NCBI RefSeq assembly: GCF_964188315.1
Contig: NC_135659.1
Location: 86,118,001 to 86,182,000 of the forward strand
Length of the DNA: 64,000 bases
Origin: Podarcis muralis
Lineage: Eukaryota
Reading direction: 5' to 3'
Shown here: positions 16,405 to 63,933 of the stretch, piece by piece
How the letters are laid out: each line of letters opens with the position of its first letter
Position numbering within the stretch: the stretch's first letter is position 1
The notes under the pieces: model-generated
The model's database searches: none
What the model was told of the DNA's origin: nothing
Seen by the model: only the letters and a program-made list of their open reading frames with translations
Program-made: the position numbers and the translations under genes

Positions 16405-17076
<672 letters not shown>

Positions 17077-41404: not shown

Positions 41405-41509
41405 TCATGGTATCATCTCGGCTGAGACTCTTCTGAAATCACTGATAAAAGTTGAAATCCAGGCAAAAAGCTCTTCTGAGTCTCGATCTTCTGCTTCCCC
41501 AAATTTCAT
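41405..41509 (-). CDS. Formin terminal coding exon H (FGE motif and stop)
   Basis: Acceptor attaccttgcag, then MKFGEAEDRDSEELFAWISTFISDFRRVSAEMIP and TGA. Matches the FH2 end pattern FGE...eelF..i..F...F. Confidence 0.9.
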   Translation of the reverse strand: MKFGEAEDRDSEELFAWISTFISDFRRVSAEMIP

Positions 41510-43419
41510 CTGCAAGGTAATAATAACAATAAAGACTAGATGTTTACTGTTATTCACATATGAGCCATGTAAAGATTATTGTGGATTGAAGAGATCAGGC
41601 AAGAGTGACGAGCTGAAATATAGCCTGCTTCCTCTATGTGAGTGTAGGGTTTGTCACAATGAAGGCCCAGGAAGCAAAATGGCACTTAAACTGGGTTGGA
41701 ACGTTCTGTTACAAAAAGCCAAACCCAAATGGTTTACAAGCAGAATTTATTGCTGGAAGCATTTTGAATACAAATGGTATAAGGATGGCAACTGATGGCA
41801 GGAAGGTCAAGATAAACAGATCCACCACATTGCAGAAATGCTATTCCATCCTCTATGTTCTCTCCTGCATTTCCCACATGTATCTTAAAGTGAGAATCAG
41901 GCCTCTTTATGATCAAAATATGCAGGACCCAACACACTTAAACAAGGACAATTGCCTCTACATTTCTAAGATGTCATGTACTGATTCCTTATTGATATGT
42001 ATTGTTGCATGCCATACCAATCTCCAAGCAAGTGTGAGATTCCAGGGGTCCCAGGCGCTCACCCAGGATTCGTATTTCCTTTTGGAAATGAGGCACAGTG
42101 GTGACTGTGGTGTCTATATGATATATGATTTACTTACACATATATACAACCTGAGCCTATGCGGTGAAATTTTTCATAGCAGAACAGTAAGGGCCAGAGA
42201 CACCAGCTTGTGAGGATGACTGTGGGAGCATGTGCGCATGATGTCACAAAGTTGTGCATGTGAGTGTCGCACCTCCTTCCCAAGCTGGACAGGAGCTTCT
42301 GAGGCTTTGGGAACAAGGGGCCAGGGAAACATTTAGGGGACTGGCCTAGTCCTCCTGGTTCACTAATCTCACACCATTGTATAGGTCATTTTGGTGACTG
42401 TTTCACAATGATGGATTTCCCTTCTCCTGAGAGGCACCCTAATTTGAGCCCAGGCATCATTTGAAAGAATGCTAGATTTTAAAAATTCTTTCCACCACTA
42501 TTTGGGATTAAGTGTTAAATAGAGTAATGGGCAGTTAGCTTATTTCACTTGCACAACAAAAATTAAAAGCAAGGATTTACTCTTGAATTACACCCGTACT
42601 ATATAATCTTTGAGAAATTCGAAATCACATCAAATTCCTTTTCGATTATTATTACAGTAATTCAGAAAGTAGATACTATTAATTGAATACATAAGCACAC
42701 CTATATCCTCAATGCATTCCCTAATTAAAATTAGGATAGTTAACTTGTCAACTTCATCTGTTTCTCACAGTTTGTTCAACCAATCCACTGCCCTAAGTGA
42801 GAAAATCACATTAACATTTTTAAGCTATTTGGATAAAGAACAATTTGGCCAGAGTTAACAAGTTAGCCATTAAATCCATACTTGGAATTTGCCCAGTTCC
42901 TGGATGCAGCATAAGGAAAAGCTATCTCTGTCTGTCATTGGTTATATCTACAACATTCTATATGTCTTAACCTGCAATTTCTGCCCCAAGCATTTAGGAT
43001 AAGAAAAGGGAGATGGAAAGAAATATTGCCATCTTTTTTCTGGTGGAGGCTCTGTGCTTTTCACAATTGCATTATATGGGTGGGATGATGAGGATCGAGG
43101 TACAGCTCTTAGGGGTCCAGAACAGCCTTTCTCAACCTACTGCCCTCCAGATGTTTTGAACTACAATTCCCATACGCTCCAGTTGGCATTACCATCCAAA
43201 CCAGCTGAAGGGTGTCCAGAGTCTATCTCAAGAGAAAATGGTAGAACTTATGGTCAGCTCAAAGGAGGGCAACAAATATTTATTCATTTAGCCAATATAT
43301 GTGCCATTTGTTCAAAGGATTTTTTCCTAAAAATGGTGACCACTAAAAGAAGTTACATAAAACAATACATAATTCCAAACATCCAAACTGTTCAATACAG
43401 TCAAATAAGTACTAATGCA

Positions 43420-43545
43420 AAAGATGGTGAGGGACCTGGAGTCCAATCACTATAAGGAAAGCTTGGATATATTTTGTCTGGAGAAAAAATGGTGGAGAGG
43501 CATTGCAAAAGCATTTTTCAGATATACGGGCTGTTGTGGCATGCC
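43420..43545 (+). mobile_element. CR1 LINE ORF2 relic
   Basis: Translates to KMVRDLESNHYKESLDIFCLEKKWWRG..AFFRY.GC, resembling CR1 MVRGLE..SYEERL..F.LEKRRLRGD. Confidence 0.65.
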
Positions 43546-44682
43546 CATGTTAGAATCAGAGAAACTAGAAGTCAGGGTGGAAGGATCTGTCACTTTTGGT
43601 TCTCCCAGTTTCTTATTTTTCTGATCTTAAATTCAGTTCTCCACATTCTGCAGCCATAAAAAAAAAACCCTCATGAAAATCCATCAGTGTTTTAGTACAA
43701 ATTTCACCTAATAAACACATCTTTATATGAAGTTTTCACTAATGTACACATTTTTTCCAAACAATTTGCCCTAATATAATGTATTTCTTTGTTATGCTTT
43801 CACCAATATATTTATTTATTTATTGTATTGCCCTTTATATGCATTTTTAAAACATTACTTGGCGAACTGCATAGCAAAATTCAGATGAGTGCAAATTTTG
43901 AAAGGTAGCTATGTTTCGGTTCACATATTTATTTATTTTTTGGAAAGTGAGAATTTAATAGATTCTGCTTCAGATGAAATCAAATTTCTCCTTCATACCA
44001 AGCTGGAACCTCACTACTGATCCCTCATCAAATAACCATACAGCATTGCTTAAAAAGCAAACTCACACTATGGAATTTGTTCCTACTTCTAAGCAAAGTG
44101 AGGACTGTGAAGTTGCATTATGGCCCATCATCAATTGCACAGAATGGTTTCAGCAAAGTCTCCTTATCCTTTGTTCTGATGGTCGATTGATTATTCATTT
44201 GCTCTGTTTCTCTTTATTTTGGCATATCAATAAAACGCATAATCTGACAACAGACTCTTACAGGGACCCAAAGCAAAGAGTCACAAATCATTCCAAATCT
44301 AATTCACTCACCAATCAACTAAACTTCCTCTATCAGTGACTAATCAATAGCTCTCACAATGAGCTCCTAATTGCACCTCTGGGGTGATGGAAGCCTGTAG
44401 ATGATAACACAGCCCACGAAAGGCTTGCCAATAATTAAGCAGTAGTGAAGAAAAGATACTATTTCTACAGCTAACGACCAAACATCTAGAAGGTGTTGAT
44501 CTCCAGCGGGGTAAATTGAAGGCAATCCTACGCGAATCAAATGTTAATCCCATCATATCTCCTTATGATGAAGCACGCACACATACCCCAAAATTGGGGA
44601 GTAACAAGTGCAGCAACCAATAGATTTATCTACATTGTTGATAATGCAGCTGCTACCAAGAGCTGCGGGATACTCTTAGGAG

Positions 44683-45040
44683 TACAGTGGTGCCTCGCAA
44701 GACGAAATTAATTCGTTCCGCGAGTTTTGTCGTCTTGCGATTTTTTCGTCTTGCGAAGCACGGTTTCGGAAAAGTTTTGGAAAAGCTTCAAAAATCACCA
44801 AAGTCTTCAAAAACCTCAAAAAAGGCTACCACACCGCGTGCTATGAGTTGCTCCTCGAAGTCAAGTCGCAACTGTATTAACGGTTTTAAGAAAAAGGAAA
44901 CAAACTTGCAAGATGTTTTCGTCTTGCGAAGCAAGCCCATAGGGAAAATCGTCTTGCGAAGCAACTCCAAAAACCAAAAACCCTTTCGTCTTGTGAGTTT
45001 TTCATCTTGCGAGGCATTCGTCTTGCGAGGTACCACTGTA
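44683..45040. mobile_element. Tigger/pogo-like MITE (cgtcttgcga repeats)
   Basis: TIRs tacagtggtgcctcgcaagacga and tcgtcttgcgaggtaccactgta, with TA ends. Confidence 0.88.
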
Positions 45041-45151
45041 TTGACAGGCTTGGGAACTCTGTTTGCTATAGATGTTCAGTGGAAAGAGTAGCACATCCAA
45101 CCAATGCATGTGCTTGTTTGGCTGCTTGTTTTATAAACAGTCCCTTATGAG

Positions 45152-45308
45152 NNNNNNNNNNNNNNNNNNNNNNNNNNNNNNNNNNNNNNNNNNNNNNNNN
45201 NNNNNNNNNNNNNNNNNNNNNNNNNNNNNNNNNNNNNNNNNNNNNNNNNNNNNNNNNNNNNNNNNNNNNNNNNNNNNNNNNNNNNNNNNNNNNNNNNNNN
45301 NNNNNNNN
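45152..45308. other. Assembly gap (N run)
   Basis: Run of N. Confidence 0.99.
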
Positions 45309-46206
45309 ATGCCCTGCCCATCTGGTTGTGTTTCCCCAGCCACTCAGAATAAAATGTTCAAATCCAAGAAGCAAAACAAACCCCCAAAAATCTGAGCATG
45401 GAAAAATTGAAGGGAGGCGGAGAAAAATTGTGCAAGACAATTTAGACAAACCCCATCCAGCTTTTGTTTAGAATGCTAGTTGCTTAAAATGTGATGTATT
45501 TATTTTTAAAAAGTAGTCATTAGTCACCAAAATGACCACCAGGTAATTCTGTTCTGGGAAGGCTGTTCTATAGCCAGAAGAGTACAACCTCAAAGGCTGT
45601 AACATAGTAGTCTGTAGTTGCACAGTCTAATTCAAAAGCTATAGTAATGATATGGCTTGAAGCTTCTGAACAGCTGCTGTGTCAGTGTTCTGCAACAGAT
45701 TTTTAAGCACCCATTTGAAATGGGTGGAAAATCACAGCCTCCAGGTAGAATCCAACAAAGATTAGTCTTAACTCATACTGCAGACTTAGGCACACCTACT
45801 CAGAAGTAAACCTCAGTGAGACTCAATGGAAATACAATACACTAGTGATGCGAAGGGGTTGCATCAGCCTGACTCATACTTCCTGAACCAATAAACAAAC
45901 TGAAACACACCTACCATTTGAAATTCATAGTTCTCCAAATTTTGTGAAGAAGGTCTCCATTATTTGAGTGAAAACAATGTGATAACCCAGGAACGTTGCT
46001 TGCAAATATGCGCGTAGAAAGAAAAATGCACTTAAAAAGCAAATAATTTGTGTGTGAGAGAGAATTTTTAAAATAAAGTGATGCAGAAATGAGGGGGAAA
46101 TGAAACAGAGAGAAACTGAAATCAACGGATCCATCCAACTTTGCATTCTGTTGACTTTCATAGCATTGGCTTCCTATCAAGCATGCGCAGGATTGCAACC
46201 TTAAGG

Positions 46207-47044
46207 TATGGTTACCAGATTTTTTTCAATGAATTCAGGGACACTTTTTTTTTTTTTTTTAAGCTGAGTAGCAACAGGGAGTCAGTAGTGGGGATGGTGA
46301 GGCAAAAGACCCTGGGCCCAAGCACACATGCATATTGTATAAAGGTGCAAAGCCCTTCTTTCGCACCCTGTGAAGCATAAATGCACAGAGTTTTTTAAAA
46401 ACTGGGCAACGGCATGCTGCCCACCCATGACGCCCGAGCCTAGCCCTTTGTTTTGACAGATTGGGGGAGGCTTGGGAGTCATGGGTGGGCAGCCATTGCC
46501 CAGGAGGGGCGCAAGGCACACGGTTTCTCTGCCAGGCAAGGTGCAATGCCCTTCTTTTGCACTCTGTGAAACATAAATGTGCAGAGTTTTTAAAAAACTG
46601 GGCAACAGCTGCCCGCCTGCGACTCCCGAGCCTCCCCAGATTGTCCAAACAAAGGGGGCAGGGGGCAGGAGATCAGGATAGGATCGGGAGTAGCAGGTGG
46701 GCAGCGCGCCGTAGCCTATTTTTTAAAAACCTGCACATTTATGTTTCACAGGGTGTGAAAGAACTGCTTTGCACCTTGCCCGGTAGAAAAACTGCACACA
46801 AGACACATCATATGGGAACTTCCGGAGAGGAAAAATGGCGGGCGCCACAGCAGCGAGCAGCTCCTGAAGCCAGCCAGAGCCAACTTCACTACCAGGCTGG
46901 CTCCGGGCTGCTGAGGTTGCTGCTGCCACGTTTCCCGGGGACAGATTTGCAAATCTGGGGACATTCCGGGGACAGAATTTGTCCGGGGACAGATATGCAA
47001 ATCCAGGGACTGTCCCCGGGAACCGGGGACGGCTGGTAAACCTA
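46207..47044. mobile_element. Non-autonomous hAT (Blackjack/MER81-MER94-like) element
   Basis: TIRs TATGGTTACCAG and CTGGTAAACCTA, a perfect 8-bp TSD ccttaagg (46199-46206 and 47045-47052), subterminal gggac repeats, and internal repeated units. Confidence 0.82.
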
Positions 47045-47658
47045 CCTTAAGGTGCAGAGCAGAAAGAGCTTGCTGAGTAAGGCTGAGACCCTGCACTAGC
47101 TTCCTGGCAGGTGAATTATTGATACTTACTATGAGGAGGATGGGTGAGGCATCAGGGAGTCTGGCGTGGTGCAAATGCCCCAGCCGAACCAGTCCAACAC
47201 TCCTGCCAGTGCACTATGCTGATGTCCACACCATGGTCCCCTTTTCCTCTCAGTAAACAACAGTGACCCACCATCCAGGAAGCTGGCAAAACAGCTCCGC
47301 TCCCTCTAGGAAGCTGCTTCTGGTGCAGAGCATATTCAATGTTATTTGCAGATGAGAATGTGTATGTAGAGAGGTGATTGCTTCTCAGTTTTACATAAAA
47401 CATTACAGAAAGGGATGGTGAGGCCCCTCAAGCATTTGGGAGCATCATCTGAACAGGAGCAGAAGATTAAAGCAATGCTGGACCCAGAAAAATGCAATTA
47501 GTGAGGTTTTACTGAAAATAACCTTTTCATAAGAATATGTCAAGGTCTTTTTCAGTGTCTCTCTTGTCTTTTATTTTAAAAAGTGTAGCTACACAGTGGC
47601 ATAGCAAATTAGATTTGAGAGTTATCATTTGTGATCCAAGGCTGCATCCTCAGTACAT

Positions 47659-47930
47659 GTGATGTGGGGAAAGGCATGGAGATACATGGAGTGTAGAAAA
47701 AGCTTTAGTGTAAGCAGTTGCCTTTCATATCACCAAAGAACCCACACAAGGGAGAAAACATTTAAATGCACGCAGTGTGGAAAGAGCTTCAGTCTAAGCA
47801 GTCAACTTATTTTACATCGAAGAACCCATGCAGCGGGAAAACCATATAAATGCACAGAGTTTCAGGAGAGCTTTCGTGGGAGCTGAAACCTTACCCAACA
47901 TTAAAAACCACAGATGGGAGAATTCACCTA
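47659..47930 (+). pseudogene. Decayed C2H2 (KRAB-ZNF-type) zinc-finger fragment
   Basis: [77 protein letters not shown]. One finger is intact; the others have lost Cys or His residues or carry stops. Confidence 0.8.
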
Positions 47931-48909
47931 AACCCGAGAAGTTGCTGTGGTCCAAGAGGTGGCTTTGGAACATAGTCCCAGGAGGTAACCACCTCTCGGG
48001 GAAACTCTTGCCCCAGTGGGCTCCACAGAGCAAAACATTTTGAACCAGGATAGTCTTTTCTTGGCAGGACACCCAGGAAAGGAGGAGGAGTTTGCAGGTA
48101 CTAGGGAGAGACTGGGGGAGGGGGTAATGAGATCCACCTGCTCTCCCACCTTTTATAACCTTTGTTCCCATACTGAGAAGAGCAATCCCAACCGGCTAAG
48201 TCTCTGAAGGACATGGAGCATAGCCTCTGATGGGGACCTTTTGCAGTCTGAGGGCCACAGGGCCTTATGGGAAGGTTTCCAGGGGCCACATGACAGTGGT
48301 GGGCAGAGCCAGAGGCGGTGGTGCAACAAATGTGAATCTTACAGTAGGCTAGTTATTACAAATACTCTCACAGCCCTCTCTGTCCTCCATCTAAACAAGC
48401 AAGAAACATCACTAGAGCTCAAGGAGATGTTCCAGCCAGGCAACACTCAAGGAGTCAACTAGAGAGGCCTGGAAAGCTATGTTTGATCTCCAAGCCCAAA
48501 GGATAAATGATGGTCTTTCCAATAGCCATGGTCTAAGCCATTTAGGGCTTTATACATAATCACCGACACCTTGAATTGTGCTTGGGAACTTTGGCTCACA
48601 GTCTAAGTAGTCAAGCACCATGGAGGTTATCAAGGGCCTGGTGAAATCTAGCCATCTCAGGCTGGCTCAGATGTCTACAGCAGAAAGTAAGAGCCATGAA
48701 CATCCATGATGGGTGTGATCTGAGGCGGGGCTCACCGGATCCTAGCCTTGGAACCTCTTCCCAACAACATCAGAGTTCATCCTTGGGCTGCATGGAGCGG
48801 TAATAAAGAAGAGAGCATATGTAGAGCACCTTTTCTTCTTTACGGAATAACTAGCATCCACCCTGCAAGCTCGTCATCCATACTTCCTCCATTGACAAAC
48901 AGAGCAGAA

Positions 48910-49165
48910 AGTAGAAGAAGAGGAGGAGGAGTTTGGATTTGATATCCCGCTTTATCACTACCCGAAGGAGTCTCAAAGCGGCTAACATTCTCCTTTCCCT
49001 TCCTCCCCCACAACAAACACTCTGTGAGGTGAGTGGGGCTGAGAGACTTCAAAGAAGTGTGACTAGCCCAAGGTCACCCAGCAGCTGCATGTGGAGGAGC
49101 GGGGAAGCGAACCCGGTTCACCAGATTACGAGTCTACCGCTCTTAACCACTACACCACACTGGCT
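48910..49165 (-). mobile_element. Squam3-like SINE
   Basis: Reverse complement of the family at 3720 and 4376. Confidence 0.85.
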
Positions 49166-49972
49166 TTGGAGCTTAGCTGCAGCAGCTCTCACATTGCTAA
49201 AGGCAACATCCAAAGTGGCCTCACCCCAGCAGTCATTGCCACTGCAAGAACATGAACTTGAAACATAAAGTAGGTACAGCATTTACAGTCAAGATGTGCA
49301 GAGAGAGTGCAATGCGTTGAGATTTACCACAGCTTGGAAAATTATGGAGAATTGTTTTGCATCCTTCTTCTTGCATACTACTTTGCATTAGCCATGCATT
49401 CATCATATTTTTTTTAATTGGATTCATCACCCGTGAAAGGAAATTCAAAGATAATAAGTGTTGATGCAAAGAGTCACTTCATTCAGGAAATGCATTAGGA
49501 ATCTCCATACAATAAAGGTTTTTGTCTGTGTCACTTAGTGTTATTTGCTAGAAGTCCCTGTTACTTTAATTAAGTATTATTTATTTATTTTGAAAAAGCA
49601 CTGAGACACGTTAAGGTAAACTGTGCAAGTTGATTAAATGAACAGCAGCAATCTGATTTAAAACATAGATGGTGCATTCCTAAGCATAGTTAGTGGAACA
49701 GAAGAAATGCCTCCTATATGCAATGAGATTTACTCCCATGTAATACATGTATGCAGGACTGCTGCCTTCAATAATTACCTAATCCAGTGCATATTTACTC
49801 AAAAGTGCACTGTTCTCAAGAGCTCGCTCCCTAGAATGGGTGTTTGAGAATGCAGCCTAAACGCTGCACTAAGAATCATATTTGTCAAAGGTGATATTTC
49901 TCTGCATTTCTAGAGGTCACTGTTGATAAGAAAACAGCTTATTTGACACTTATATTTTAAAATAAAACGTAC

Positions 49973-50056
49973 CAGTATGTTGTGATAGGCCTTTTTCATT
50001 TCTTGACAGCTTCTAAATAACTGAGAAAGGTCGCCTTCATATGCCTGAATCAAATC
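49973..50056 (-). CDS. Formin FH2 exon G
   Basis: Acceptor ctttatgtttcag, then DLIQAYEGDLSQLFRSCQEMKKAYHNIL (84 nt), then donor GTACGT. Resembles the helix preceding the FH2 yFGE motif. Confidence 0.85.
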
Positions 50057-50510
50057 CTGAAACATAAAGCACAATCTGGAATGAGTGTCACATTAAAGTC
50101 TAATGCGACCTCAAAGCCACTTACAAACATCAATAAAAAAAGATCACAAACACTGGGTTGGAGGGAGTCAAACTTGAATGTTCAGAATTCGCACACACAT
50201 GCACCACACTCAGACACACACACACACACACACACACAGGCATCCTCCACTCCTTTAACTTGTCCATCATAGTGGTGGGGTGAGAGGAAGGCTTAAGCAA
50301 GGAGTGGAGAACCTCAGGCCATCCTGCAGACCTTCCCTGTCAGGATTCTTCTCAGGCCATGCCCTTCTCCAATCCACACCCCTCACCAGGTGTGCTCTGC
50401 AGCCTCCTTCAATGCTTTTGCCTGGCTTGAAGGTGCCCATGAGCTGGGAGAATACTTCTTGCTCGCCTGAATGGAGAAATGTGAGTGTGGCCTCTGTGTG
50501 GAAGGAATGT

Positions 50511-50860
50511 AAGGTAAAGGGACCCCTGACCATTAGGTCCAGTCGTGACCGACTCTGGGGTTGCGGCGCTCATCTCTCTTTATTGGCCGAGGGAGCTGGC
50601 GTACAGCTTCTAGATCATGTGGCCAGCATGACTAAGCCGCTTCTGGCGAACCAGAGCAGCGCACAGAAATGCCATTTACCTCCCCACCAGAGCGGTACCT
50701 ATTTATCTACTTGCACTTTGACGTACTTTCGAACTGCTAGGTTGGCAGGAGCAGGAACCGAGCAATGGGAGCTCAGCCCATCGTGGAGATTTGAACCACC
50801 GACCTTCTGATTGGCAAGTCTAGGCTCTGTGGTTTAACCCACAGCGCCGCCTGCGTCCCT
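50511..50860 (-). mobile_element. Sauria SINE
   Basis: Full body with TSD tggaaggaatgta. Confidence 0.9.
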
Positions 50861-51099
50861 GGAAGGAATGTAGCCTACCATAAAAGATGCAGCTTTCCAT
50901 TTTTGCCACTGGCCCCAGCTCCTGGAAGGTTGCCCACAAGGAAATGTAGGCTTCACACTGTAAAGGGTCCCCCACTCAGGTTTAAACAAACTATCCATCA
51001 CACAGGACCAAGTTGAGAGCAGAAGTTCAAATATCTCCTCTCATACCAGCACTAGGAAAGGGCACAAGCCCACCATGTTATCTGCTAACAACCCTAACC

Positions 51100-51400
51100 A
51101 GAGGTCCAGCTCCGAGGGCCTTCTGGCTGTTCCCTAACTGTGAAAAGTGAAGTTACAGGGAACCAGGCAGAGGGCCTTCTCGGTAGTGACACCTACCCTG
51201 TGGAACGCTCTCTCTTCAGATGTCAAGGAAATAAACAACTATCTGACTTTTAGAAGACATTTGAAGGCAGCGCTCTTTAGGGATGTTTGATATTTTATCA
51301 TGTTTTTAATATTCTGTTGAGAGTCACCCAGAGTGGATGGGGAAAGCCAGCCAGATGGGTAGGGTATAAATATCATCATCATCATCATCATCATCATAAC
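51100..51400 (+). mobile_element. L2 LINE 3' fragment
   Basis: Same family as 7508, with an (ATC)n tail. Confidence 0.82.
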
Positions 51401-52569
51401 AATCACATCTGCTTGGAAGTAAGTTCTATTCTATTCAATGAGGCTTGCTCCCAGGTAAGTGGTACTAGGATTGCAGCCATAGTATTTTAATTTTTAAAAA
51501 AACATTGTTATGCTGTGTATCATTCTTCTCTGTATTCATTTGATAATGATGATGATGATGATGATGATGATGATATTTATTTTAGCAAATTGACACATGC
51601 TAGCCAGCTGCTTATCTCACCATGGTATAAGTATGAACTGGGCTGTAAATAGATAATAAATTCAATTCCAGTAATAACCCTCTGAAACGCTATTCCTCAA
51701 GGTCAGAGAACCCTCTGGTGTGGCATTCAAAGAAATGCATATGGCTACAGCTAGAGGAAAAATTGGCAATACACAATCACATAGACATGAGTCTGTGGCA
51801 TACACAGAGGATTATTGATCAAGACTGACAATTGGCTTGGCTATACCAAATTACACGACAGGTCATCTTCAGATCCTGGACAAAGAAGGAAAATGTTCCA
51901 CTGCAGTGATGTCTTTGATTGTGGGCTTAGAGGAACATAAACTTTAAGCAATAGCAGTAACATGTTCTCCTGGAGCAGTAGGGTAATTGACAGCATCTCC
52001 TTGCTCTGGCAAGTGATGGTGAGGCTTTCAAGCTTTCTTCTTATGTGTGACAACTTGAAGCTAGTCATAGGATGAGGAAAATAGCCAAACGGAGATTGGA
52101 TACTTATTTCCTTCTCTTTAACGTTGTTTCTACGTCATGCTAGGAGTTGCAGCCATGCAACTTTCTAGAACAGGAATCTACAACATGTAACATGAATGGC
52201 GTCAAACTGACATGGATCATGACCAGTCAGATGGCCCCTCTGTGTAGAGAGTCCCAGGCAGGGACAAAATCCAAGAGGTTTGCTGAGTGCATGGTGGGCC
52301 GCCAAATATCACTAGCGGACATCCCAGAGTCTGTGGTCTAGATCTTGCTTGTTTTTTTCATTTTTTGGGTGACTTGCAGACAAGTTTCTGTGAACGAGGA
52401 GTGGGGAATCCTTTGCATTCCCCCATGGGGAATTTTCTGGGAGACACAGACCATGGAGGATGCAAAGCCCAAGGCAAAAATGGGCAACTCTGTGTATGTG
52501 ACCTATACCTACATACAGCAGGACACATTTCAGCCATGCAAATCTGTTCATGCCTCTTTATCCTCCATC

Positions 52570-52795
52570 TAAGCAGTTCGAAAGCACGTCAAAGTGCAAG
52601 TAGATAAATAGGTACCGCTCTGGCGGGAAGGTAAAAGGCGTTTCTGTGCGCTGCTCTGGTTAGCCAGAAGCGGCTTAGTCATGCTGGCCACATGACCTGG
52701 AAGCTGTACAGCGACTCCCTCAGCCAATAAAGTGAGATGAGCGCCTAGAGTCGGTCACGACTGGACCTAATGGTCAGGGGTCCCTTTACCTTTAA
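52570..52795 (+). mobile_element. 5'-truncated Sauria SINE
   Basis: Runs from gcagttcgaaagcacgtc to gtccctttaccttt. Confidence 0.85.
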
Positions 52796-53044
52796 GCAAG
52801 CAAAATGCATTATCTCAGTTCAGTTATTCATTCTTTCCAGAAAGCAAATGTACTGTGAGAAGTGTGGCTTGGAAAGAGGGTGGGTGTCCAGGAAGAGTCG
52901 CAAGGGGCTGTAGGGCCACATTCAAAAGTTCCCCATTCTTGTCATAAACCCTTCTTTCCCTGCATCCAAAAAACCCCTTCACATCTGATCTCTGAAATTC
53001 TGTGTGGTATATACCCATTTAAACATACTCCTGACCACAGTTAC

Positions 53045-53148
53045 CTTCAGCTCTTTGTAGAACTGTGACTCCACAGCTCCTGCCTTGATAACCTTGGGTT
53101 TGATTAGTCTTCTGCACTCAGCAATGCTGTCTAATTCTCTCCGTAAAA
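53045..53148 (-). CDS. Formin FH2 exon F
   Basis: Pyrimidine-rich acceptor ending tgattag, then (V)LRRELDSIAECRRLIKPKVIKAGAVESQFYKELK (104 nt, phase 1-0), then donor GTAACT. Confidence 0.82.
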
Positions 53149-54422
53149 CTAATCACAAAACAGAGAGGAAGAAAATGAGGCATTTTGCCTATCACACTGC
53201 TCTGACTTTATTCATTCTGTTTGTTTCAGGAGCTGATACTTCTCATGCACTCACCAATCAATCAATCAATCAATCAGAGAAGAATGATAGCTTCATGCGA
53301 ACCTTTAAGCATTCCTTTGAGCATGTGGTGCTTCTCCCAGCAATATCCTATTCAGCACTTGAAGACAGTAGGCATCAAAATGGGAAAAGGACTGTCCATA
53401 TTGGGCTTCTCATAACATGCATGGTATACCTTCTGTACAACACAATAAAGTAGGCTACTGGCTTTCTCTCAAATCATTGCTTTTTCTTCTTGATCTTTTC
53501 CACCCCACCCCAGTTTGAAGTTCTCTGACAGTTCTATGGTTCTATGGTTACTTGCAATCATCTGATCAATATCTCACTGCAATCAGTCAACTGGAGTCTT
53601 CCTATCAAACCTTATGGTTTTTCAATTTGGTTTGAAATTCTCTTTCATAGCTCTCCCAACTTCTGTCTTGCATTTGGCCAGCAAATTTGGTCCCTTTTCA
53701 ACTGGGATTGGATATAAGCACTGGGACCAAATACATATTCAAAAATATGAAACGCAGAAATCCTTGCACTTCCAAAAATACTTTTTGAAAAGTCAAAGTC
53801 AAAAGAATCTGGAATTAAAAAGGAATTAGTAAGGAAAATTTGGATATGGATGGGGATCATTAGACTAACATTCAGAGACATCCAAACAAGGCAGCTGGAA
53901 TGTGTGAATGGAATCCAATAATACAGATTATTATAAAGGAATTTGATATATTGCTGATACAATAATTGATTATATGTTGGCATACGTTATAGGAAGTTTA
54001 TAGTTAAGGTAAAAGTACTGTAATTGTATATTTGATTCTCGGCATCTGACAGGATGCATTTTTGGAAATGGTAAATTGTTTTGTTGGTTGGTTAATTAAC
54101 TACTCTTTCTTGCATGCAATTCATTTTGTAAGATACGCACACATGCCTCTTTGAATTCTTTCTGACTGTTCCGTCTTCAAAGGTTTTGGGACTCTGAAAC
54201 CTAAACTAAAGTTGCTAGTAGATCTTTCCGAGAGTGGAATTTTGAGGACAATCATAAAGTTACATAGGAAGGTGCCTTATGCCAGCCGGTCAGACAGTTT
54301 CTCCATCTGGAGAAGTACCATCTACTCTGACAGGCAAAGTATTTTGGCAGCAGAACCCTGGAGATTTGAACCTGGGATATTATGCACGCAAAGCAGGTGC
54401 TCTATTACTGAGCAATGGAAAA

Positions 54423-54685
54423 TACCGTATTTTTCGCTCTATAAGACACACCAGACCCTAAGACCATAAGAAGTTTTTGGAGGAGGAAAACAAGAAAAAA
54501 AAAACCTGAATCCCAGAAGCCAGAACAGCAAGAGGGATCGCTGAGCAGCGAAAGCAACAATCCCTCTTGCTGTTCTGGCTTCTGGGATAGCTGTGCAGCC
54601 TGCATTTGCTCCATAAGATGCACACACATTTCCCCTTACTTTTTAGGAGGGAAAAAGTGTGTCTTATAGAGCAAAAAATACGGTA
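54423..54685. mobile_element. Tc2-like MITE
   Basis: TIRs taccgtatttttcgctctataagac and gtcttatagagcaaaaaatacggta. Confidence 0.85.
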
Positions 54686-55414
54686 AAGACCGTGCTTCCT
54701 TCAACCTCCACAGTAGGCCTCCTGCAGGGATTGGCACTACTTAGGTGCCTTCTTCAGAATGAGACCAGAGAGATTTTCTGTAAGGACATAAGAAGAGCCC
54801 TCTGTTGGAGGCACCATCTGGTCCAGCATCCTGTTTTCAACAGCAGCCAACAAGATGTCTCAGGAACTTTCCTTGCATCCTTGGCCAACACTAGCATCTC
54901 TTCCTTGCATGCCTAGCAGAGAGCACTGGAGCCAGGATGGAGACACGTTACCTGTTAGTCCAGGGGACAGGAGAGATCTGGGATGATTTGCTGCATATTT
55001 CCATTATCTCAATGCCTAACTCAAAGTTTTGATTTAAATTACTTCCTGAGTCTTTGTTTCGCAACCACACTAAGTTTCTTCTGCCTCCCATACCTCTTCT
55101 AAAGGTCAAGGGAGCACTGGTTTAAGGCAAAATGAAATTGACTTCTCTATGCGCAATTTGGAAACTTCATGGCCATTACTTAGATATTTCTCCTCAAATT
55201 CCCTTGCAGAGACATGACAGGTTAAAATATTGCCATGGCAACCACCCCCCTCAGTAGTTTGAATGTGTTTTTTTATTATTATTAAAGAATCAAACAAACC
55301 CAAAAAGCTCTTCTCTTTGAGACCTACAAGCTCAACACGATGGAACCCAGTTCCAGGTGACTTCACAAGGTGTGAAAAATGCTTTCGGTGAATTCTGAAA
55401 CCATATTTACATAC

Positions 55415-55447
55415 CTTCAACTTCAGCACTGAGACCTTTGATGGAAG
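55415..55447 (-). CDS. Formin FH2 exon E (33-nt micro-exon)
   Basis: Acceptor ttttctgctttgccacag, then (A)SIKGLSAEVE plus G, then donor GTATGT. Phase 1-1; it joins exons D and F in frame. Confidence 0.8.
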
Positions 55448-55575: not shown

Positions 55576-55705
55576 CAGCAGAAACAGCTTTAAATTCTGT
55601 CAACTCCTGAGAAAATGTAGCCAAATCAGGCTCATGTAAGAAGATCTGTTCCACAAGGGCATGGAGCAAGGTGAAATTCCTCTCCTTGCCTCGTAGCAAT
55701 GATAA
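55576..55705 (-). CDS. Formin FH2 exon D (TLLH motif)
   Basis: Acceptor cttctgtttgtag, then LSLLRGKERNFTLLHALVEQIFLHEPDLATFSQELTEFKAVSA plus G (130 nt), then donor GTAAG. Confidence 0.93.
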
Positions 55706-55941
55706 CTACAAACAGAAGACAGCAATGTAATTGACAGGCTTGCCTAGATTTGGGGTGTATTATTTTCAAAAATGGAGGCAGCGGGGAAATGTTATAGCTC
55801 CAAGGAAAATTTAATAAGAGCAGAAAAAGTGGGGTTAAGATTTCTTTAAGCTCCTATCCACCCTAACAGGATTCAGAGGTCTTTCTGCAAAGGGCTTGTA
55901 CTACCTTTCTCACTGCATCCTCATGAAGGATGTTGTGAATT

Positions 55942-56155: not shown

Positions 56156-58684
56156 GGATTTGCCAGAAGGAGGTGTACAAGGCCCCATCCAACCGCCTTA
56201 GGGACTCCAATCTGGATTTGTGTGTAGGGTTTACTTCTTAGCCTTTTCTTTTCTGAAGATGTTCCACAAGGCTTAGGATCAGATTTTCCTACTCCTAGAT
56301 GGGCTTCCTTCCCAGGTTGGCAAGCCCCACCTGTCCCTTACTTCCCTCTACAGCATGCGCAGAAACCACCATCTTGGCCATTGGTCTTGTTCGCTCAATT
56401 TGCCAGAGCCAGTCTTCAGTTACAAGGGAAGGCCCTAATTCATAGACGGTTTGAGATCCAATGGCTACCCTTACCTGTTTTAGTTGGCCAGTTGAAGCCA
56501 TTCCCAGGATATGGCCACTGTTGCGTGCTCAGAGCTGAGTGCAGGATGGACACCAAAGGTGGGTAAACTACCCCAGAAGGAGCATGATGTGTCCCCCACC
56601 AGAGGTGTCCCCCACTTTTTACCCTACACCTCTAATGTACAGCTCTGCTTTCCTGGGAAGACATCAGTGAGGCCGAGAGAAGTCGTCATCTGGGCAGCCC
56701 AGGACCTCCATACACCCTGCCCAGGCTTGTGTCCTGGGGAGGTCACTTTGGTGCTGCTAATGCAGTGGTTTGACTTTACCCCTGGAGGTGCACTCCATTG
56801 TCTCTTGAGACAGACAGGTGCCAACAGTGCCACTTAGGAACTAAAGCTGAGAAATACTACCACAGCTAAGAACCAGCCTGGCTATTGCAATGTTCTTCAG
56901 AGACCCTTCAGTGATTTCTCTTGCCTTCAGAAGTGAGGTAGGTGGTGATCTCGGACAGGGCCTTATCCATTGTGACACCCATGTCTGGCATACCATTCCC
57001 GGGGAAGCTTGCCATGAGCAGTATTCTAACTCAGCTCAAGACTTTCCACTTTCATAACGGGACTCCCCCCCGTCTCCTCACCTGACTTGTGTCCTCCCCA
57101 AACCCACTCCAGGAGGTTAGGGAAACCCTTAAATTTAGGGGGCACAGGAGGAGGGGGGAACATTGCATTGTGAAATGCTTCCACTGACAGAAACAGAGAC
57201 TTAGCACCACATTGGATTCTATGCCTGGTGTTGACGTTAATGTATTTTTGGTGCCAAATGAAGACCTTTTTATTTGACTTATAAATTTTGTTTTTTGGGT
57301 TGTGCTTTAACATTGCCTCTGTTTTAAAGTTTATTTTACACTACTCTGCTATTTTGGGCTTTTTTTGGGATGTTCTTATCACTTTCGAGCTGCTCTGAGA
57401 AACCTTTTAAAGGTTGAAGAAAGCCCTCTGCCAGGCTGCCACACACAACAAGCTTCTGAGGGCAGAGGAACTACCAAGGGGGTCCTCTCTGCTGAGTAAA
57501 TATTACTCCTGGGAATAATTCTTCTGAAGGTTTTATATTTTAAATAGATACAATAACCTAGGCATTTTTCACCTTTTGGTATTTGTCCCATTCCTCCATT
57601 TTTGGGGGGGTGGGGGCTTATGCACTAGAGAGACAGAAGCCCCCTCCAGAAATTATTCCTCCACACCAGTTGGCAACAGGGCACCCTCCCAAAATTGAAT
57701 AACTTCAGCTCTCTGCACCCGACCTTTGGCCATGCTGGCTGAGGCTGATGAAAGCTGGAGAACAACAATATCTGGAGGGCATCAAGTTGACTACCGATGC
57801 TCCACAGGTTCTCTGATCTTCCGCAGCAAACTTGAATGTATTAAGGTGTTGCCAGCAGGGATGGAGGTGTTGAGGGTGCTGCTCCCTCATATATGCTTTA
57901 AATACAGAGAGAGAAAATGTCTGAAGGGGAAACTGGCAAAAAATAGCTGTACACCCATGTACAAAAAGGAAAGCAGGTAATGTGGTCTTGGGAGTAACCC
58001 ACTGGACGATTTTAACATTGAAAATGGGACATATATATTTCCTAGACAGTGACAAAAGGTTTCACACTCCAGTGTAAAACAGTAAGAATAGTTCATGTAA
58101 AACAATGCTTTAAGTCTCCGTAGTGGGATGGAGAAAGATGTCGTCTGGCACAGTAAGGTTTTGTAGATATTTTTCATAATGATAAATGTGGTAGTTCAGC
58201 AGAAATATAAAAAAGGCAAACATCCAAATTGGGGCTCTGAATTGTCGCTTGCATCATAAATCATTCACTCAATATACTGAAATCCCTGGGAAGTGCCATG
58301 GTGGGGGAAAATAACTTCCACTTCTATTTAGAGATGTGGCAGAATTTGATAATATGCTTAAAGGTTCAAGGCTGCCTAGAGAATATGCAGTCAGTAATAG
58401 GAGCAGCCAAACACAGAGTTTGAGGCAAAGGAAACTGCTCTTATTGCCAACATTTTCAAAGGCAAATCATCAGTCCTGCAAATGGATCACAGATAATACA
58501 ACCAAAACAGTCACTTTTACATGGGCATATCCTATTGCATCTTAATTCTGGCCAGAAACTGTTGTTCATTAATTTCTGTTTCGGACAAAATTTTGTTATT
58601 TGCAGATGTCCACACATTTTAAATGATATTCCTGCGATGTGGAGACTACCAGATGGAAGCCACCATTCTGGGCAGCTTCCAATA

Positions 58685-58870
58685 TACTGTATTTACTCAA
58701 ATCTAAAACTGTACTCACCTTTCTGGGCCAAATTACATTGTGAAAATTAGGGTGTGCATTAGATTTGATGGCACATTTACATTCACCAGCAAATACTTTT
58801 TTTGGTTTCAAGGTTCTGAAAATTGAGGTGCGCATTAGATTCGATGGTGCATTAGACTCGAGTAAATATG

Positions 58871-58872
<2 letters not shown>
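58685..58872. mobile_element. Tc2-like MITE nested in an L2/MITE composite
   Basis: tactgtatttactcaaatctaa ... ttagactcgagtaaatatggt. Confidence 0.7.
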
Positions 58873-58910
<38 letters not shown>

Positions 58911-59354
58911 CAATAGGCATTAAACACTAAAAAACTTCTCTATACAGGGCTGCCTTCAGATGTCTCCTAAAGGTTGTATAGTAACTTATCTCCTTGGCTC
59001 AGGGATCACATAACTCCATACCCTCCAACATTTCTCCAATGAAAATAGGAGACGTCCTAAGGAAAAGCAGGGCAGTCCAGGATAAAATCAGAAAATGAGG
59101 CAGCTTCTGTAGATCTGGGACTGTCCCTGGAAAATAGGGACACTTGGAGGGTCTGGACTTTGCCAGAGTAGTTTGCACTGAGTCTCAGCATTTCTTTGAG
59201 GGGTTTGGAGCATCTAGAAAACATTCATCTGAAGGGAATGACATTGCTGTATTATTTATCTGCACTCAGGAGAAAAAGAGAGAGATTTAAACACTTTTTT
59301 AAGGGAAATTGTACTCTCCTACAATCCAAGCCTTTCCCCAGCAAAACCACTTAC

Positions 59355-59507
59355 TTTAGCCAGAGAAGACAGCTGAAAGCCTTTGGCCTTCTCTCTCCCA
59401 GCATTTTCATTTAAGTAGTTCCCAATGGCTAAGATATATTCCAGCACAGCAACAAATCTCGGGTTGTCCTGCAGCTGTTTGCATGCCCTGATCTTCTGGT
59501 TTATGAG
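59355..59507 (-). CDS. Formin FH2 exon C (GNYLN post motif)
   Basis: Acceptor ttgtgttccag, then LINQKIRACKQLQDNPRFVAVLEYILAIGNYLNENAGREKAKGFQLSSLAK (153 nt), then donor GTAAGT. Contains the hallmark FH2 motif GNY(M/L)N...GF.L.SL.KL. Confidence 0.95.
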
Positions 59508-59792
59508 CTGGAACACAAGGAGGCATCGTTTGATTAAATTGTCAAGGGTGACTAAATGGGGCTCTCTGCGTTGTTTCTGGTCAGTCAGGAATTAATCTAG
59601 ACCATGGGAATCTCAAGCCATAAAAGGGGCCTCTGTAGGGATCTGCCATGAAGACTTCATAGTCAAGATTGCTACATTCTCACGCACTGTAATGGCAGGG
59701 ATCTTCGGCATTTGCTTGTGGGCACATTGTGCAACATGTCACTGATGCAATAATAGTGGATTAGCGGTAGATTTATACTGGACCACTTTATT

Positions 59793-60037
59793 AAGAAGAG
59801 TTTGGATTTGATATCCCGCTTTATCACTACCCGAAGGAGTCTCAAAGCGGCTAACAATCTCCTTTCCCTTCCTCCCCCACAACAAACTCTCTGTGAGGTG
59901 AGTGGGGCTGAGAGACTTCAGAGAAGTGTGACTGGCCCAAGGTCACCCAGCAGCTGCATGTGGAGGAGCGGGGAAGCGAACCCGGTTCCCCAGATTATGA
60001 GTCTACCACTCTTAACCACTACACCACACTGGCTCTC
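59793..60037 (-). mobile_element. Squam3-like SINE
   Basis: Reverse complement of the family at 3720 and 4376. Confidence 0.85.
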
Positions 60038-62602
60038 AATTATTAGTTGTTCCTGCAATGCTTCCCTAATATTAATACGTTTATTGCTATGTGGAGAGGC
60101 ACTTTTGTGCTATAACAGGCGAGGAAACTGGTAGACCAAGATTGCCCCACAGGCCTCCCCATTTGTCCTGCAAGGCTGCTTTTCTGCTAGTCCTGTGGGC
60201 ACCATGTTGGCTACACTTGACTTGGAAAGTAATTACATACAATAGCAGCTTCAGAAAGGGCAATTTGGAGCAGTAAAGCTGGTGAGAAGGGGTAACTGGA
60301 CTCCTTGTGCTGCTTCTATGTTCCTAATCTTCCCTCCCCTTCCCTCCTCTGTAGGGTGACAGACATAGATTGAGGGATCTGTGAAGAAAAAGTCTGCTTT
60401 TTGGACCTCACAGGCAGAATAAGAGCTGTGAAAGGACAACTCTGAGCAGAAAACCAACAGGCAAGGGAAAGGTTAATATGCCACCATTGCTGCCACTTTT
60501 CCACTTCATGTTACCCCTTTGCAAATTTGCTTTTGCTTAGAAATAGCAGCCTTTGATGGCCTTTGACACATTATTGGCAGGTAATGTGCCAGTCATTTCA
60601 TGCTTTGTGTTCTCAAAGAGATACACGGTTAGTTTCAAAAATCAGCAGGAAGAAATAGCAGCCTGAATATTCAATACAGGCAGTAGCTTGTCTTATCTGC
60701 CACTTGTGTGCATAATCATATGTCCCCCTGCACCCAGACCACAGGTGTCTCCCTATGGAGGGTTTGTGCAAATCACTGCTTCTGCAACTACACAATAGGG
60801 CAAAAACAGGGTGCAAAAGGTTACTCTCTCTTACTCTCCCAGTGCACACTTGTCAATAATCCCAACACATTCTTATTTTGACCCCAGTGTGCTCTTTCAA
60901 AACTGATTTCCATAATGAAAAAAGGATGTGCAATTTTAACTTGTTCAGATCTTGTTGGGCTGGATATTCTTTTTTTCTTTATTTCTTTTGTCTCTCCCAA
61001 TATGGATGTATATTTTTCACCCTTCCTTATATTGAGCTCATTAATTAAAGAAGGATTGCCTCCCTAGAGCTGCTATTAGCCATAGAGGGAGAAACATGTG
61101 GACTTTAAAAATTAATTTTTCATATTTTCCCATCCACAAGTTATAGCAGCTCCAATTAAATAAGGGCTGTATGTAATCTGGACCAGGGCTATGGTGTGGG
61201 GGAAAGTGTGTCTCTCCTCATGCTGTGACCCCAATCAAAACCGGTGCCCCATACCTGCTTTTCCAAAAATAGAATGACATTGGGAGCACCCAACAGAGAG
61301 CTGTTATTTTCAACCAGTATCTGGGAGCAATTGGCTCTAGTTCAGGTTCAAGGCTCTAGAGAGGTTTTAGCATTGATGCTTAGTTGCAATTGACACAATG
61401 CAGGAGGTTCTTTGGACCAGCCTTTGGGGTTCAGGTTAAGTTCAGCTCCCTCCCTGCAGCCTCTTCAAACTGGATGATTGGCAGTCTTTTTGAGACTGTG
61501 GACACCTTGAGCCCCAAACCAGATTTTCATTATTATGTAAAACAAAACAGTCAGTGTTGGATGTATTGCTTGGGCACCTAGACTGTGTTTCCATAGGTAA
61601 ACAAGAATGACAAATATCTCGAAAATTAAATCTCAAACAATATCTACAAGGTATCAGCTGTGTTGATTGGCATGGACTGTGTCATCGTTCATGAGGTATT
61701 ACCTTCTGGAGGTGCTATTTCCGCTAATGAACTCTCTCAGGTTTTGACTTGCCCAAGGCTATTTTAGATACCCCAGCAGGTAGCGCATATTGTATTTCAA
61801 AATCTAGACGATCTCAAATTTACTTTCATGCTAGTTATGACTCTCTTGGCTATCAAATCCAGGAGCAATACATAGATCATCAAAACCTTTCCCCACATTT
61901 CTTTTGAATAATGCAGTGAAATGACAACTTATACATCAGGCTGCCCGCATTATTACAATATGAATGTCAACGACATGACGGGTGAGTTGCTTTTTCCAAG
62001 GAAAATCTCTGCTCACACACATACGTAGATAGACACGCCGGCTTTTAAAATTGACATGGAGGGCATCTGGTGCTTTATAGTGCATCCCTAATAATGTTTA
62101 CTCAGGAGTAAGGATGGCGGGGGGGCAGGAATTCAGTTTAGTTCACGTTTAAAGGTGAACCTACCTAATTCTCACTTCCTGGAACAAAATGCAAACCAAA
62201 ATACAGCCATCCCTCAAAATTTGTGCTTCTCCAAAGCTTGCAGTGCAGTTCTCCAGCCAAGTAACATATACAAAAGAACGTATTGAAATGTATAATTCTT
62301 CTGTTTATTTTACATTTGCCTGTTTATCTTTGGCTATAACATGAATTTGGTTCCCTTAATGATAACTTCGATTTAGCTTATCCAAACTGATGTGCTAATG
62401 TGGACTTACGACTGGGGGCGGGGGGACAAAAACACCAAGAGAAAGCAAGTTTGACAGATTCACAGTCCACTGAGTACAAAGGGACTTTATCCAATGTTAG
62501 TATGGATAGGATTACAGCAAGCTCAATGTTTAAATTTATTTAAGCCACACACACAAACAAATATAATATGCTTACCCACAGAAATCAAGGTATGATACTT
62601 AC

Positions 62603-62689
62603 TGGCCGCAGTTCAGCCATGGATTCTGGTAGTTCACGAATGGAATGCAAGAGGTCAAGTTTCTTGCATAAATTAGGTATTTTACACAT
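62603..62689 (-). CDS. Formin FH2 exon B
   Basis: Acceptor cctttatgcag, then MCKIPNLCKKLDLLHSIRELPESMAELRP (87 nt), then donor GTAAGT. Phase 0-0. Confidence 0.88.
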
Positions 62690-63842
62690 CTGCATAAAGG
62701 AAAGGAAACTCAGAAAAATTCCTGTTCTCCTACATAAGAAATTTTTAAGCTGCCTTGTTAAATCTGTTCTAGGGGTTCCCACAACCCTCTGAAGCAGATT
62801 TAAAGAGGGTTTGGAGTATGTATGCATGGAGGAAGGAGATGAAGGGAAGTTCTACTGAGCAAACATAAATCCTTGCTCCGATGGAATGTATTCATTTGAT
62901 ACCAGCTCGTCAATTCATGAGAAAATTGTGCTCAAAAATGATCAAAATGGAAAGGGAGAGGGAAATTGGTGGAATTCCCAAGCAGGAGCTACAGGGTTGT
63001 TGTTGAATTTCTCTCACTTTCAAGGCACCCATTTACAAGGTTGTGAAGCAGCATTTGTGAGTGCCCTTTCATTCAGTCTTCAGTTTAATTCTCCAGTGGT
63101 CTGCACTCTGCAGCCTTCCTGAGTGTTTCCTGGAAACCCCTGAAGTCTGCTCAATGGCCAGCTTACTCAGAGTAAGATGACAGAGCTTTTCCCATAGAGA
63201 GCCAAGAGACTACAAAGTGCTGGAGAAACGGAAAGGAAAAATGCATATGCCCACTCTACCCAAAGCCACCTTGTAACAATAACGAAAGCTCAATTCCACA
63301 ACCACAAAATGTTTAAAAAAATTCTAAACTGTCCTGAGAATGAGGCAGCCTCTTTTGAAGTGGAAGAAAACTTTTGAGAAATTTGGGGACACGTTTTGGC
63401 ATAGCACCAGCAAAGATGTTGGAGGCTAAACTTGGGACCAGACACATCCGTATTGAACTATAACCCTAGGTAAAAGCTCCCACCTTGGGATATATCAGCT
63501 ATAGACATGCATCTTCAACAATGCATTGACCTTAAGTCACACAACTGCTGTTCTGTACTTTAAAAAACACAAATGAAATATTTTAGAAATGCTTTTTTAA
63601 CGTTTCAGTTTTAACTAAATTCGAATAATCTAACACTGTGTCTTTTGCACAGTCTTCTGTGTTAAGGAGACAGATCAGGATGTTTGAATAAATAAAGCAA
63701 CCCAGCTGCTGCAAAGGATTTCTTTGTTCCAAGAAAGTTCAATGAGTTGCATTTTCCCAAGTTTTAAACTCAGCATAAAATCAACAAACAGACAATATGG
63801 CATGTACAAAACCACGTCTTAAACCGTAGATATATTTCTTAC

Positions 63843-63933
63843 TTCTAGCATAAATTGATCCACCAGATGCAGTTCTGAAGGAGACCCTTTGAACGACATG
63901 TACATTTCTATATCTTTCACGGTGGGCTGGTAT
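63843..63933 (-). CDS. Formin FH2 exon A (first in window); candidate PHCF-subtype formin
   Basis: Acceptor tttcccgtag, then 1 nt plus YQPTVKDIEMYMSFKGSPSELHLVDQFMLE, then donor GTAAG. Resembles the FH2 segment ending in EQF/DQF. Confidence 0.88.

Follow-up and report, generated by a model that had tools for sequence, protein, structure and literature searches.

The 64,000-nucleotide stretch of Podarcis muralis DNA analyzed here (contig NC_135659.1, positions 86,118,001 to 86,182,000; referred to below as the window, and numbered from its first letter) carries on its minus strand eight coding exons of a formin gene, running from 63933 to 41405, and, downstream of these on the same strand, coding exons of CBLN4. 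The best explanation of the formin exons, which we hold with high confidence, is that they are the final eight of about 17 coding exons in a lacertid gene of the pleckstrin-homology-containing formin (PHCF) subtype, placed head-to-tail upstream of CBLN4. The formin exons are intact, are spliced as predicted, and are transcribed at a low level.

The first formin exon in the window (exon 1, 63843-63933; 91 nucleotides [nt]) consists of one base of a split codon followed by 30 codons (YQPTVK...FMLE), with an AG acceptor and a GTAAG donor. It has the same length and splice sites as its counterpart in Zootoca vivipara (L001:71589-71679) at 97% DNA identity, and the exon that precedes it lies beyond position 64000. 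Exon 2 (62603-62689; 87 nt, 29 codons, AG/GTAAG) is again equal in length to, and 97% identical with, that of Zootoca. Exon 3 (59355-59507; 153 nt, 51 codons), which is 99% identical to the Zootoca exon, encodes the core of an FH2 domain with the motifs GNYLN and GFQLSSLAK, and exon 4 (55576-55705; 130 nt, ending in phase 1) encodes the motif TLLH. Exon 5 (55415-55447) is a micro-exon of 33 nt that runs from phase 1 to phase 1 between an AG acceptor and a GTATG donor; it is 100% identical to Zootoca L001:81595-81627, and its residues are present in all orthologues. Exon 6 (53045-53148; 104 nt) and exon 7 (49973-50056; 84 nt, 28 codons) are followed by the last coding exon, exon 8 (41405-41509), which has an AG acceptor, 34 codons and a TGA stop at 41405-41407, and whose encoded C-terminus coincides with those of the orthologues. 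A pattern scan gave two AATAAA signals in the overlapping range 40570-40581 on the minus strand, 828-834 nt past the stop, as a candidate 3' end.

All of these exons have canonical AG/GT sites, with a polypyrimidine tract plus AG at every acceptor and GTAAG, GTATG, GTAAC or GTACG at the donors, and the seven introns have phases 0,0,0,1,1,0,0. The spliced coding sequence of 787 nt comprises the leading base of the split codon, 261 codons and the TGA, with no internal stop. In the Zootoca vivipara gene, the lengths of the eight exons and their AG/GT sites are equal to those in the window, at DNA identities of 96-100%.

The spliced product is exactly the C-terminal 261 residues of the P. muralis RefSeq protein XP_077785425.1 (DAAM2-like isoform X1, 738 residues), and also forms the tail of XP_077785426.1 (formin-F-like isoform X2). 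The initial annotation of this DNA, made from the letters alone, had proposed the same chain of eight minus-strand exons, with these GT-AG sites and phases and no internal stop; every piece of that chain was located, and its match to the RefSeq tail is exact. The RefSeq entries therefore describe the same gene, with the same exons and no difference in sequence, although under misleading names. An older P. muralis model, XP_028591613.1, is one residue apart from the window product (V5A). At this residue (63918-63920, minus strand), valine is found in the window and in the current P. muralis RefSeq models, and alanine in the older P. muralis RefSeq and UniProt models and in all other lacertids; this is either a polymorphism or an assembly difference.

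The window product differs at three residues from the protein of P. lilfordi, at six from those of Lacerta agilis and P. raffonei, and at 11 from that of Zootoca; the 90% identity cluster of the Zootoca protein includes the proteins of P. muralis, P. lilfordi and L. agilis. Aligned with the Hemicordylus protein, it showed 83% identity without gaps over residues 477-737 of 737 (E = 3e-149). Such an alignment, together with the exact RefSeq match, is well outside what chance would give. A protein search with the Hemicordylus sequence as query returned squamate orthologues from Hemicordylus, Zootoca, Eublepharis, Pogona, Phrynocephalus, Heteronotia, Lerista and Podarcis. The same search returned orthologues from turtles, crocodilians, many birds, coelacanth, lungfish, amphibians, sturgeon, gar, bichir and teleosts. 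No protein from Anolis, another non-agamid iguanian, a snake, the tuatara, a marsupial or a monotreme was among the best 120 orthologues listed. The names attached automatically to these orthologues clash with one another, and include uncharacterized protein, formin-F-, -H- and -I-like, delphilin-like, DAAM1/2-like (DAAM1-A), formin-like 6, 13, 17 and 19, and diaphanous homolog 1. The gene is thus already known, being present in RefSeq for P. muralis and for dozens of reptiles, birds and fishes under misleading names, and because it is annotated in P. muralis and many other reptiles it is not a discovery.

That the exons encode part of an FH2 domain, as the initial annotation had read from the peptide motifs, was borne out by profile searches. 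Exon 3 alone matched Pfam PF02181 (FH2) with E = 7.6e-14 (52.1 bits, against a cut-off of 34.8) over profile positions 187-232, and exon 4 alone with E = 7e-5 (22.5 bits) over positions 233-274, so that the two matches are contiguous across the splice. The other pieces were silent in the single-exon Pfam scan (two of seven matched), but they are too short or too weakly conserved for their silence to be informative. In the full-length P. muralis protein, the FH2 domain was found at E = 2.7e-68 (231 bits), spanning residues 366-729 and positions 4-371 of the 372 in the profile, and no other domain scored above the Pfam threshold. Among PDB entries, exon 3 also matched the FH2 structures of DIAPH1, Cdc12, Bni1, FMNL3, DAAM1 and INF2. 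When exon 3 was used as query in an exhaustive phmmer search, a tight group emerged at 65-82% identity, whose full-length members have 650-830 residues, with FH2 at the extreme C-terminus and without any other strong Pfam domain. The exons in the window encode the C-terminal 70% of the FH2 domain and end without any tail, the protein stopping nine residues past the end of FH2 (residue 729 of 738).

Transcription of the formin exons was supported by RNA contigs covering exons 4-7, i.e., three introns, of which one joint was seen directly and the other two through contig pieces that break at exon borders. Two RNA runs yielded contigs carrying the joint between exons 6 and 7 (53045-50056), and a third run supplied two raw reads across it; the joint skips 2988 nt bounded by CT..AC on the plus strand (GT..AG on the minus strand). 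One contig piece spans exactly 55576-55705 (exon 4), with 30 and 33 more letters on its two sides, and pieces at exon 6 cover 53044-53148 and 53044-53150. The borders of exons 4, 6 and 7 coincide exactly with ends of contig pieces, exon 7 ending at 49973. A 752-nt contig extends beyond the exon 7 donor by 557 nt, leaving room for exon 8 and about 450 nt of 3' untranslated region. The initial annotation had proposed that junction reads be sought for all seven introns; the exon 6/7 joint is the one obtained directly, and the remaining support consists of the contig breaks at exon borders among exons 4-7. Other contigs run from exon 7 (49973-50172) and exon 5 (55257-55444) into the introns, and these could represent unspliced pre-mRNA, retained introns or DNA carry-over.

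The PHCF subtype was defined by Pruyne, with the vertebrate genes lying between MC3R and CBLN4 (Pruyne, 2016; PMC5047451). The subtype is missing from placental mammals, and six relic blocks persist in the human interval (Pruyne, 2016; PMC5047451). The initial annotation had referred to such a survey, with retention in non-placental vertebrates and human relics between CBLN4 and MC3R, in agreement with the published account. The ancestral architecture is PH-PH-FH1-FH2-PH, and Strongylocentrotus purpuratus LOC100890634 is a named PHCF (Pruyne, 2017; PMC5628938); further examples are opossum LOC103097295 and chicken LOC419333 (Pruyne, 2016, PMC5047451; Pruyne, 2017, PMC5628938). The opossum PHCF has no proline-rich region, and chordate and mollusc PHCFs have no C-terminal PH domain (Pruyne, 2016; PMC5047451). 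In the lizard protein, the C-terminal PH domain of the ancestral architecture is absent, the stop coming nine residues after FH2. This does not exclude membership of the subtype, because chordate and mollusc PHCFs have been described in just that state.

To place the FH2 domain, a maximum-likelihood tree of 53 FH2 rows was computed under LG+C20+F+G4. The window sequence grouped with Podarcis and Zootoca (support 100/99), within squamates (100/100) and within vertebrates (100/99), and these within a PH-formin (PHCF) clade of 36 rows (100/100, stem length 0.98) that includes S. purpuratus LOC100890634. DIAPH and INF/FHDC1 formed separate clades, each with support of 100/100. The gene tree matches the species tree, with short squamate branches, which is the pattern that a single-copy gene under vertical inheritance should give. 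On these comparisons, the gene is orthologous to a single-copy gene present from lamprey to birds in the PH-PH-FH1-FH2 formin subtype. The initial annotation had suggested a tree spanning all formin subtypes: placement in the PHCF clade was obtained, and rows for DAAM, FMNL, FHOD, FMN and MWHF were not included.

Similarity scores agreed with the tree. With the FH2 domain of a crinoid relative as query, PH+FH2 proteins scored 236-900 bits, whereas all other formins scored at most 156 bits. The former came from echinoderms (including S. purpuratus LOC100890634), hemichordates, corals, a nemertean, a bivalve, a tunicate, a shark and teleosts; the latter were INF2, DIAPH1/2/3, sponge delphilin-like proteins, FHDC1 and plant class II formins. 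The Zootoca protein matched invertebrate PHCFs with E = 1e-80 over FH2 and, in the crinoid and hemichordate proteins, E = 1e-23 over the N-terminal region. Against solved structures, the Zootoca FH2 domain scored 80.8 bits with DIAPH1, 76.8 with DAAM1, 74.2 with FMNL3 and 64 with INF2, so that it is equidistant from all four. The PHCF label given in the initial annotation is therefore well founded: the sequence falls outside DIAPH and INF/FHDC1, and matches DAAM1 and FMNL3 no better than DIAPH1.

For the N-terminal part of the protein, encoded beyond position 64000, the Zootoca orthologue served as a proxy, its identity to the P. muralis protein being 94%. AlphaFold2, supplied with a 53-sequence alignment, predicted that residues 15-59 form a helical hairpin, that 288-372 are disordered and that, between these, two modules (67-159 and 174-282) each have seven strands and a C-terminal helix, mostly with predicted local distance difference test (pLDDT) scores above 90. 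A Foldseek search of the PDB with the N-terminus gave 202 matches at E <= 1e-3, headed by centaurin-alpha1, the DH-PH-PH modules of FARP1/2, the PH-PTB modules of Dok7 and IRS-1, and the PH tandem of myosin-X. The N-terminus of the Zootoca orthologue is thus predicted to consist of two PH domains, as the initial annotation had anticipated for the region upstream. The best structural matches to residues 67-282, i.e., ADAP1 (centaurin-alpha1), FARP1/2 and myosin-X, had Foldseek E values of 2e-8 to 2e-5; their sequence identity is just 8-14%, so the likeness is one of fold and not of family, and ligand specificity is not transferable. The alignment shows no variation at K74, K82 and R83, which lie at the beta1-beta2 hairpin of the predicted first PH domain. 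For invertebrate members of the subtype, Pfam PH matches are precomputed.

The position of the gene also corresponds to the published PHCF locus. In zebra finch and quail, the orthologue lies between an upstream, divergently transcribed MC3R and a downstream C1q gene on its own strand. The upstream gene encodes a 325-residue receptor that scored 532 bits with MC3R, compared with 438 for MC5R and 430 for MC4R, and the downstream C1q gene has 94-97% amino-acid identity to the CBLN4 exons of the window. The order MC3R-formin-CBLN4, for which the initial annotation had suggested looking beyond the window, is thus found at these two avian loci.

The lizard protein therefore shares with Pruyne's PHCFs the FH2 clade, the tandem N-terminal PH domains predicted in the orthologue, the lack of GBD, DID, DD and DAD, the CBLN4 neighbor and the lack of a C-terminal PH domain. 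In the present analysis, the gene is present and intact in lacertids, and annotations of it exist for geckos, skinks, agamids, cordylids, turtles and crocodilians. A difference concerns the proline-rich FH1 region, which is down to two or three prolines in squamates and birds, whereas Pruyne reported a proline-rich region to be lacking only in opossum. Within the 110 residues that precede FH2, the longest run of prolines was 10 in sturgeon, 8 in bichir and 6 in gar; lungfish, frog and turtle each had 5, alligator had 4, and birds and squamates had 2-3. Proline clusters before FH2 are limited to APPPFP and QPP in P. muralis and to APPLFP and QPP in Zootoca, where fish members have runs of 6-10 prolines. 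The proline-rich FH1 is a variable feature within the PHCF family, because the opossum member is without it.

Several points weigh against assignment of these exons to a functional PHCF gene. The tree is without DAAM, FMNL, FHOD, FMN and MWHF, so that DAAM and FMNL are set apart by score only, and FHOD, FMN and MWHF via the literature only. The upstream half of the gene (PH, FH1 and the start of FH2) is outside the window, and was judged via the P. muralis RefSeq protein and the 94%-identical Zootoca orthologue. Vertebrate members fall short of the Pfam PH threshold, a frog protein scoring 22.6 bits where 25.1 are required. RNA depth is only 2-8, with a single junction seen directly and some contigs entering introns. 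The ratio of nonsynonymous to synonymous substitution rates (dN/dS) of the window exons was 0.14 against alligator and 0.12 against both finch and quail, but these ratios are rough, because dS against archosaurs is near saturation. Against Zootoca, dN/dS was 0.49 (six synonymous and 11 nonsynonymous changes), which is indistinguishable from neutrality. Finally, the literature searched on PHCF formins yielded no functional or biochemical study of any PHCF, and for that reason the mechanism set out below is one that we infer from established FH2 biology.

The alternative that fares best, although we consider it very unlikely, is that the gene is intact but on its way out, i.e., recently relaxed or non-functional and transcribed as noise, resembling the path to its loss in placental mammals. 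The low RNA depth, the contigs that retain intron and the ratio of 0.49 against Zootoca would all fit this, as would the near disappearance of FH1 and a linker that evolves almost freely. However, with 17 changes the error on this ratio is wide, and dN/dS is inflated at short divergences. Between Zootoca and archosaurs, dN/dS was 0.07-0.18 for the PH tandem and 0.12-0.20 for FH2, as against about 0.65 for the linker. FH2 and the PH tandem are thus under purifying selection, and the FH1-bearing linker evolves almost neutrally. Moreover, the eight exons, the 14 splice sites and the stop are all conserved with Zootoca. The changes specific to the window lineage are just three (A5V, G58R and K168R), all conservative, and complete open reading frames of 738 codons are annotated in five lacertid species. 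A gene tree that tracks the species tree, with short squamate branches, likewise speaks against decay. The proposal in the initial annotation that this is a functional lizard gene thus holds, on the basis of intact exons, spliced transcripts at low depth and dN/dS values of 0.12-0.14 against archosaurs.

Less probable still, and in our judgment highly improbable, is that the gene belongs to a standard formin subtype, as the RefSeq names (DAAM2-like, delphilin-like, formin-F-like) would have it. The orthologues do carry the names DAAM2-like, DAAM1-A, delphilin-like and diaphanous homolog 1 in their source databases, and DAAM, FMNL, FHOD and FMN rows were absent from the tree. However, these names conflict across species and even between isoforms, as they would because FH2 is about equally distant from the standard subtypes: the DAAM1 score (76.8 bits) is no better than those of DIAPH1 (80.8) or FMNL3 (74.2), whereas invertebrate PH+FH2 formins match at E = 1e-80. 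There were no Pfam matches to Drf_GBD, Drf_FH3 or Drf_DAD in the P. muralis protein or in ten orthologues, and no PDZ domain was detected by Pfam in the full-length protein, so that neither the GBD/FH3 region of DAAM nor the PDZ domain of delphilin is represented, and a tandem of PH domains is predicted at the N-terminus instead. The 100/100 clade with a PHCF named in the literature, and the location between MC3R and CBLN4, also favor PHCF over a standard subtype. DAAM membership, tried as a candidate in its own right, was rejected, given the lack of a GBD/FH3 match in Pfam, a DAAM1 FH2 score below that of DIAPH1, and the predicted N-terminal PH tandem.

A gap of 157 N (45152-45308) lies within the last intron (41510-49972), with 3.6 kb of sequence between it and exon 8 and 4.7 kb between it and exon 7. 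The idea that it hides a coding exon, or that its flanks are not truly adjacent, draws on its location inside the gene span and its uncertain true length, but has next to no probability: both sides of the exon 7/8 junction are in phase 0, alignments to 13 orthologues continue across it without insertion or missing residues, the P. muralis RefSeq protein equals the exon model exactly, the intron is of comparable size in Zootoca (7.3 kb, against 8.5 kb in the window), and an RNA contig extends beyond the exon 7 donor by 557 nt. Because the 261-residue product is gapless against the orthologues across this junction, no coding sequence is hidden in the gap.

As a PHCF, the lizard protein has in common with DIAPH1-3, DAAM1/2 and FMNL1-3 the FH2 fold and the motifs GNYxN, GFxLxSLxKL and TLLH, and by analogy the same activity would be expected of it, i.e., that of a dimeric actin nucleator and barbed-end binder. 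It differs from them in that its FH2 domain matches theirs at only about 75-81 bits and about 25-30% identity, in having neither the GBD/DID/DD N-terminus nor the DAD tail, and in its vestigial FH1. In the mechanism we propose, FH2 would dimerize head to tail, nucleate actin filaments and either ride on their barbed ends or cap them. Placement or regulation of the protein, probably at membranes, would fall to the pair of N-terminal PH domains and not to a GBD/DID module that binds Rho GTPases, so that PH-based targeting would stand in place of DID-DAD autoinhibition relieved by Rho. Since there is no DID or DAD, autoinhibition of the diaphanous type cannot apply. With FH1 reduced to PPP or PP, the protein would probably deliver profilin-actin weakly or not at all, and the same would hold for the fast elongation that depends on it. 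It is possible, although we regard it as rather doubtful, that amniote PHCFs have lost a working FH1, and that the lizard protein is a PH-targeted, profilin-independent nucleator, capper or bundler and not an elongation factor. If this were true, such narrowing of function may have come before the gene was lost outright in placental mammals. An FH2 formin with predicted PH domains and scarcely any FH1 is a testable oddity, for whose study lizards, birds and fish are the only vertebrate systems.

The weight of these results as a discovery is small, because the subtype, its locus and its placental loss were published in 2016. The names DAAM2-like, delphilin-like, formin-F-like and uncharacterized are wrong or empty, and PHCF should replace them. 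The new points are minor ones, namely the presence of the gene across squamates, turtles and crocodilians, whose rows were blank in the published synteny figure of 2016 and are now filled, and the graded erosion of FH1 in amniotes.

Downstream of the formin gene, the window contains two coding exons of CBLN4 on the minus strand. Exon 1 (16411-16701) comprises 97 codons from the ATG and scored 141.8 bits with Cerebellin-4 (PDB 5h4b), compared with 103.3 for Cerebellin-1, in accord with the neighbor named in the initial annotation. Exon 2 (5460-5576; 39 codons) is 95% identical to quail L004:41845-41961, and exon 3 was not found in the window. An NCBIfam scan of the CBLN4 exons gave no match, which is uninformative given that this library is oriented towards prokaryotes. 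A distance of 24.7 kb separates the formin stop from the CBLN4 ATG at 16701, which is downstream on the same strand. A CpG-island promoter is suggested by a GC-rich block, open in several frames, at about 16.4-17.1 kb.

Repeats and fragments of other genes occupy parts of the remaining sequence. Between CBLN4 and the formin gene, an open frame of 283 codons on the plus strand (19063-19911) matched the C-terminal part of the RVT_1 profile (E = 3e-10), and is a truncated copy of a retrotransposon of the type without long terminal repeats. In the same intergenic region lies a second assembly gap, of 316 N (20833-21148). On the plus strand within the last formin intron, opposite to the gene, an 83-codon open frame (47635-47883) encodes C2H2 zinc fingers (zf-H2C2_2, E = 4e-12) and looks like a fragment or retrocopy of a KRAB/C2H2-type gene. 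A translated motif (...GPLTIRSSRDRLWGCS.HLALLA...) recurs near 3042, 6210, 19797, 35650, 39147 and 50259, which suggests one abundant family resembling short interspersed nuclear elements. Finally, in four intronic blocks (50491-50884, 51082-51278, 52461-52854 and 54234-54824) RNA contig depths summed to as much as about 10^5, with many variant letters; the blocks are dispersed repeats transcribed from numerous loci, and lie outside the formin transcript.

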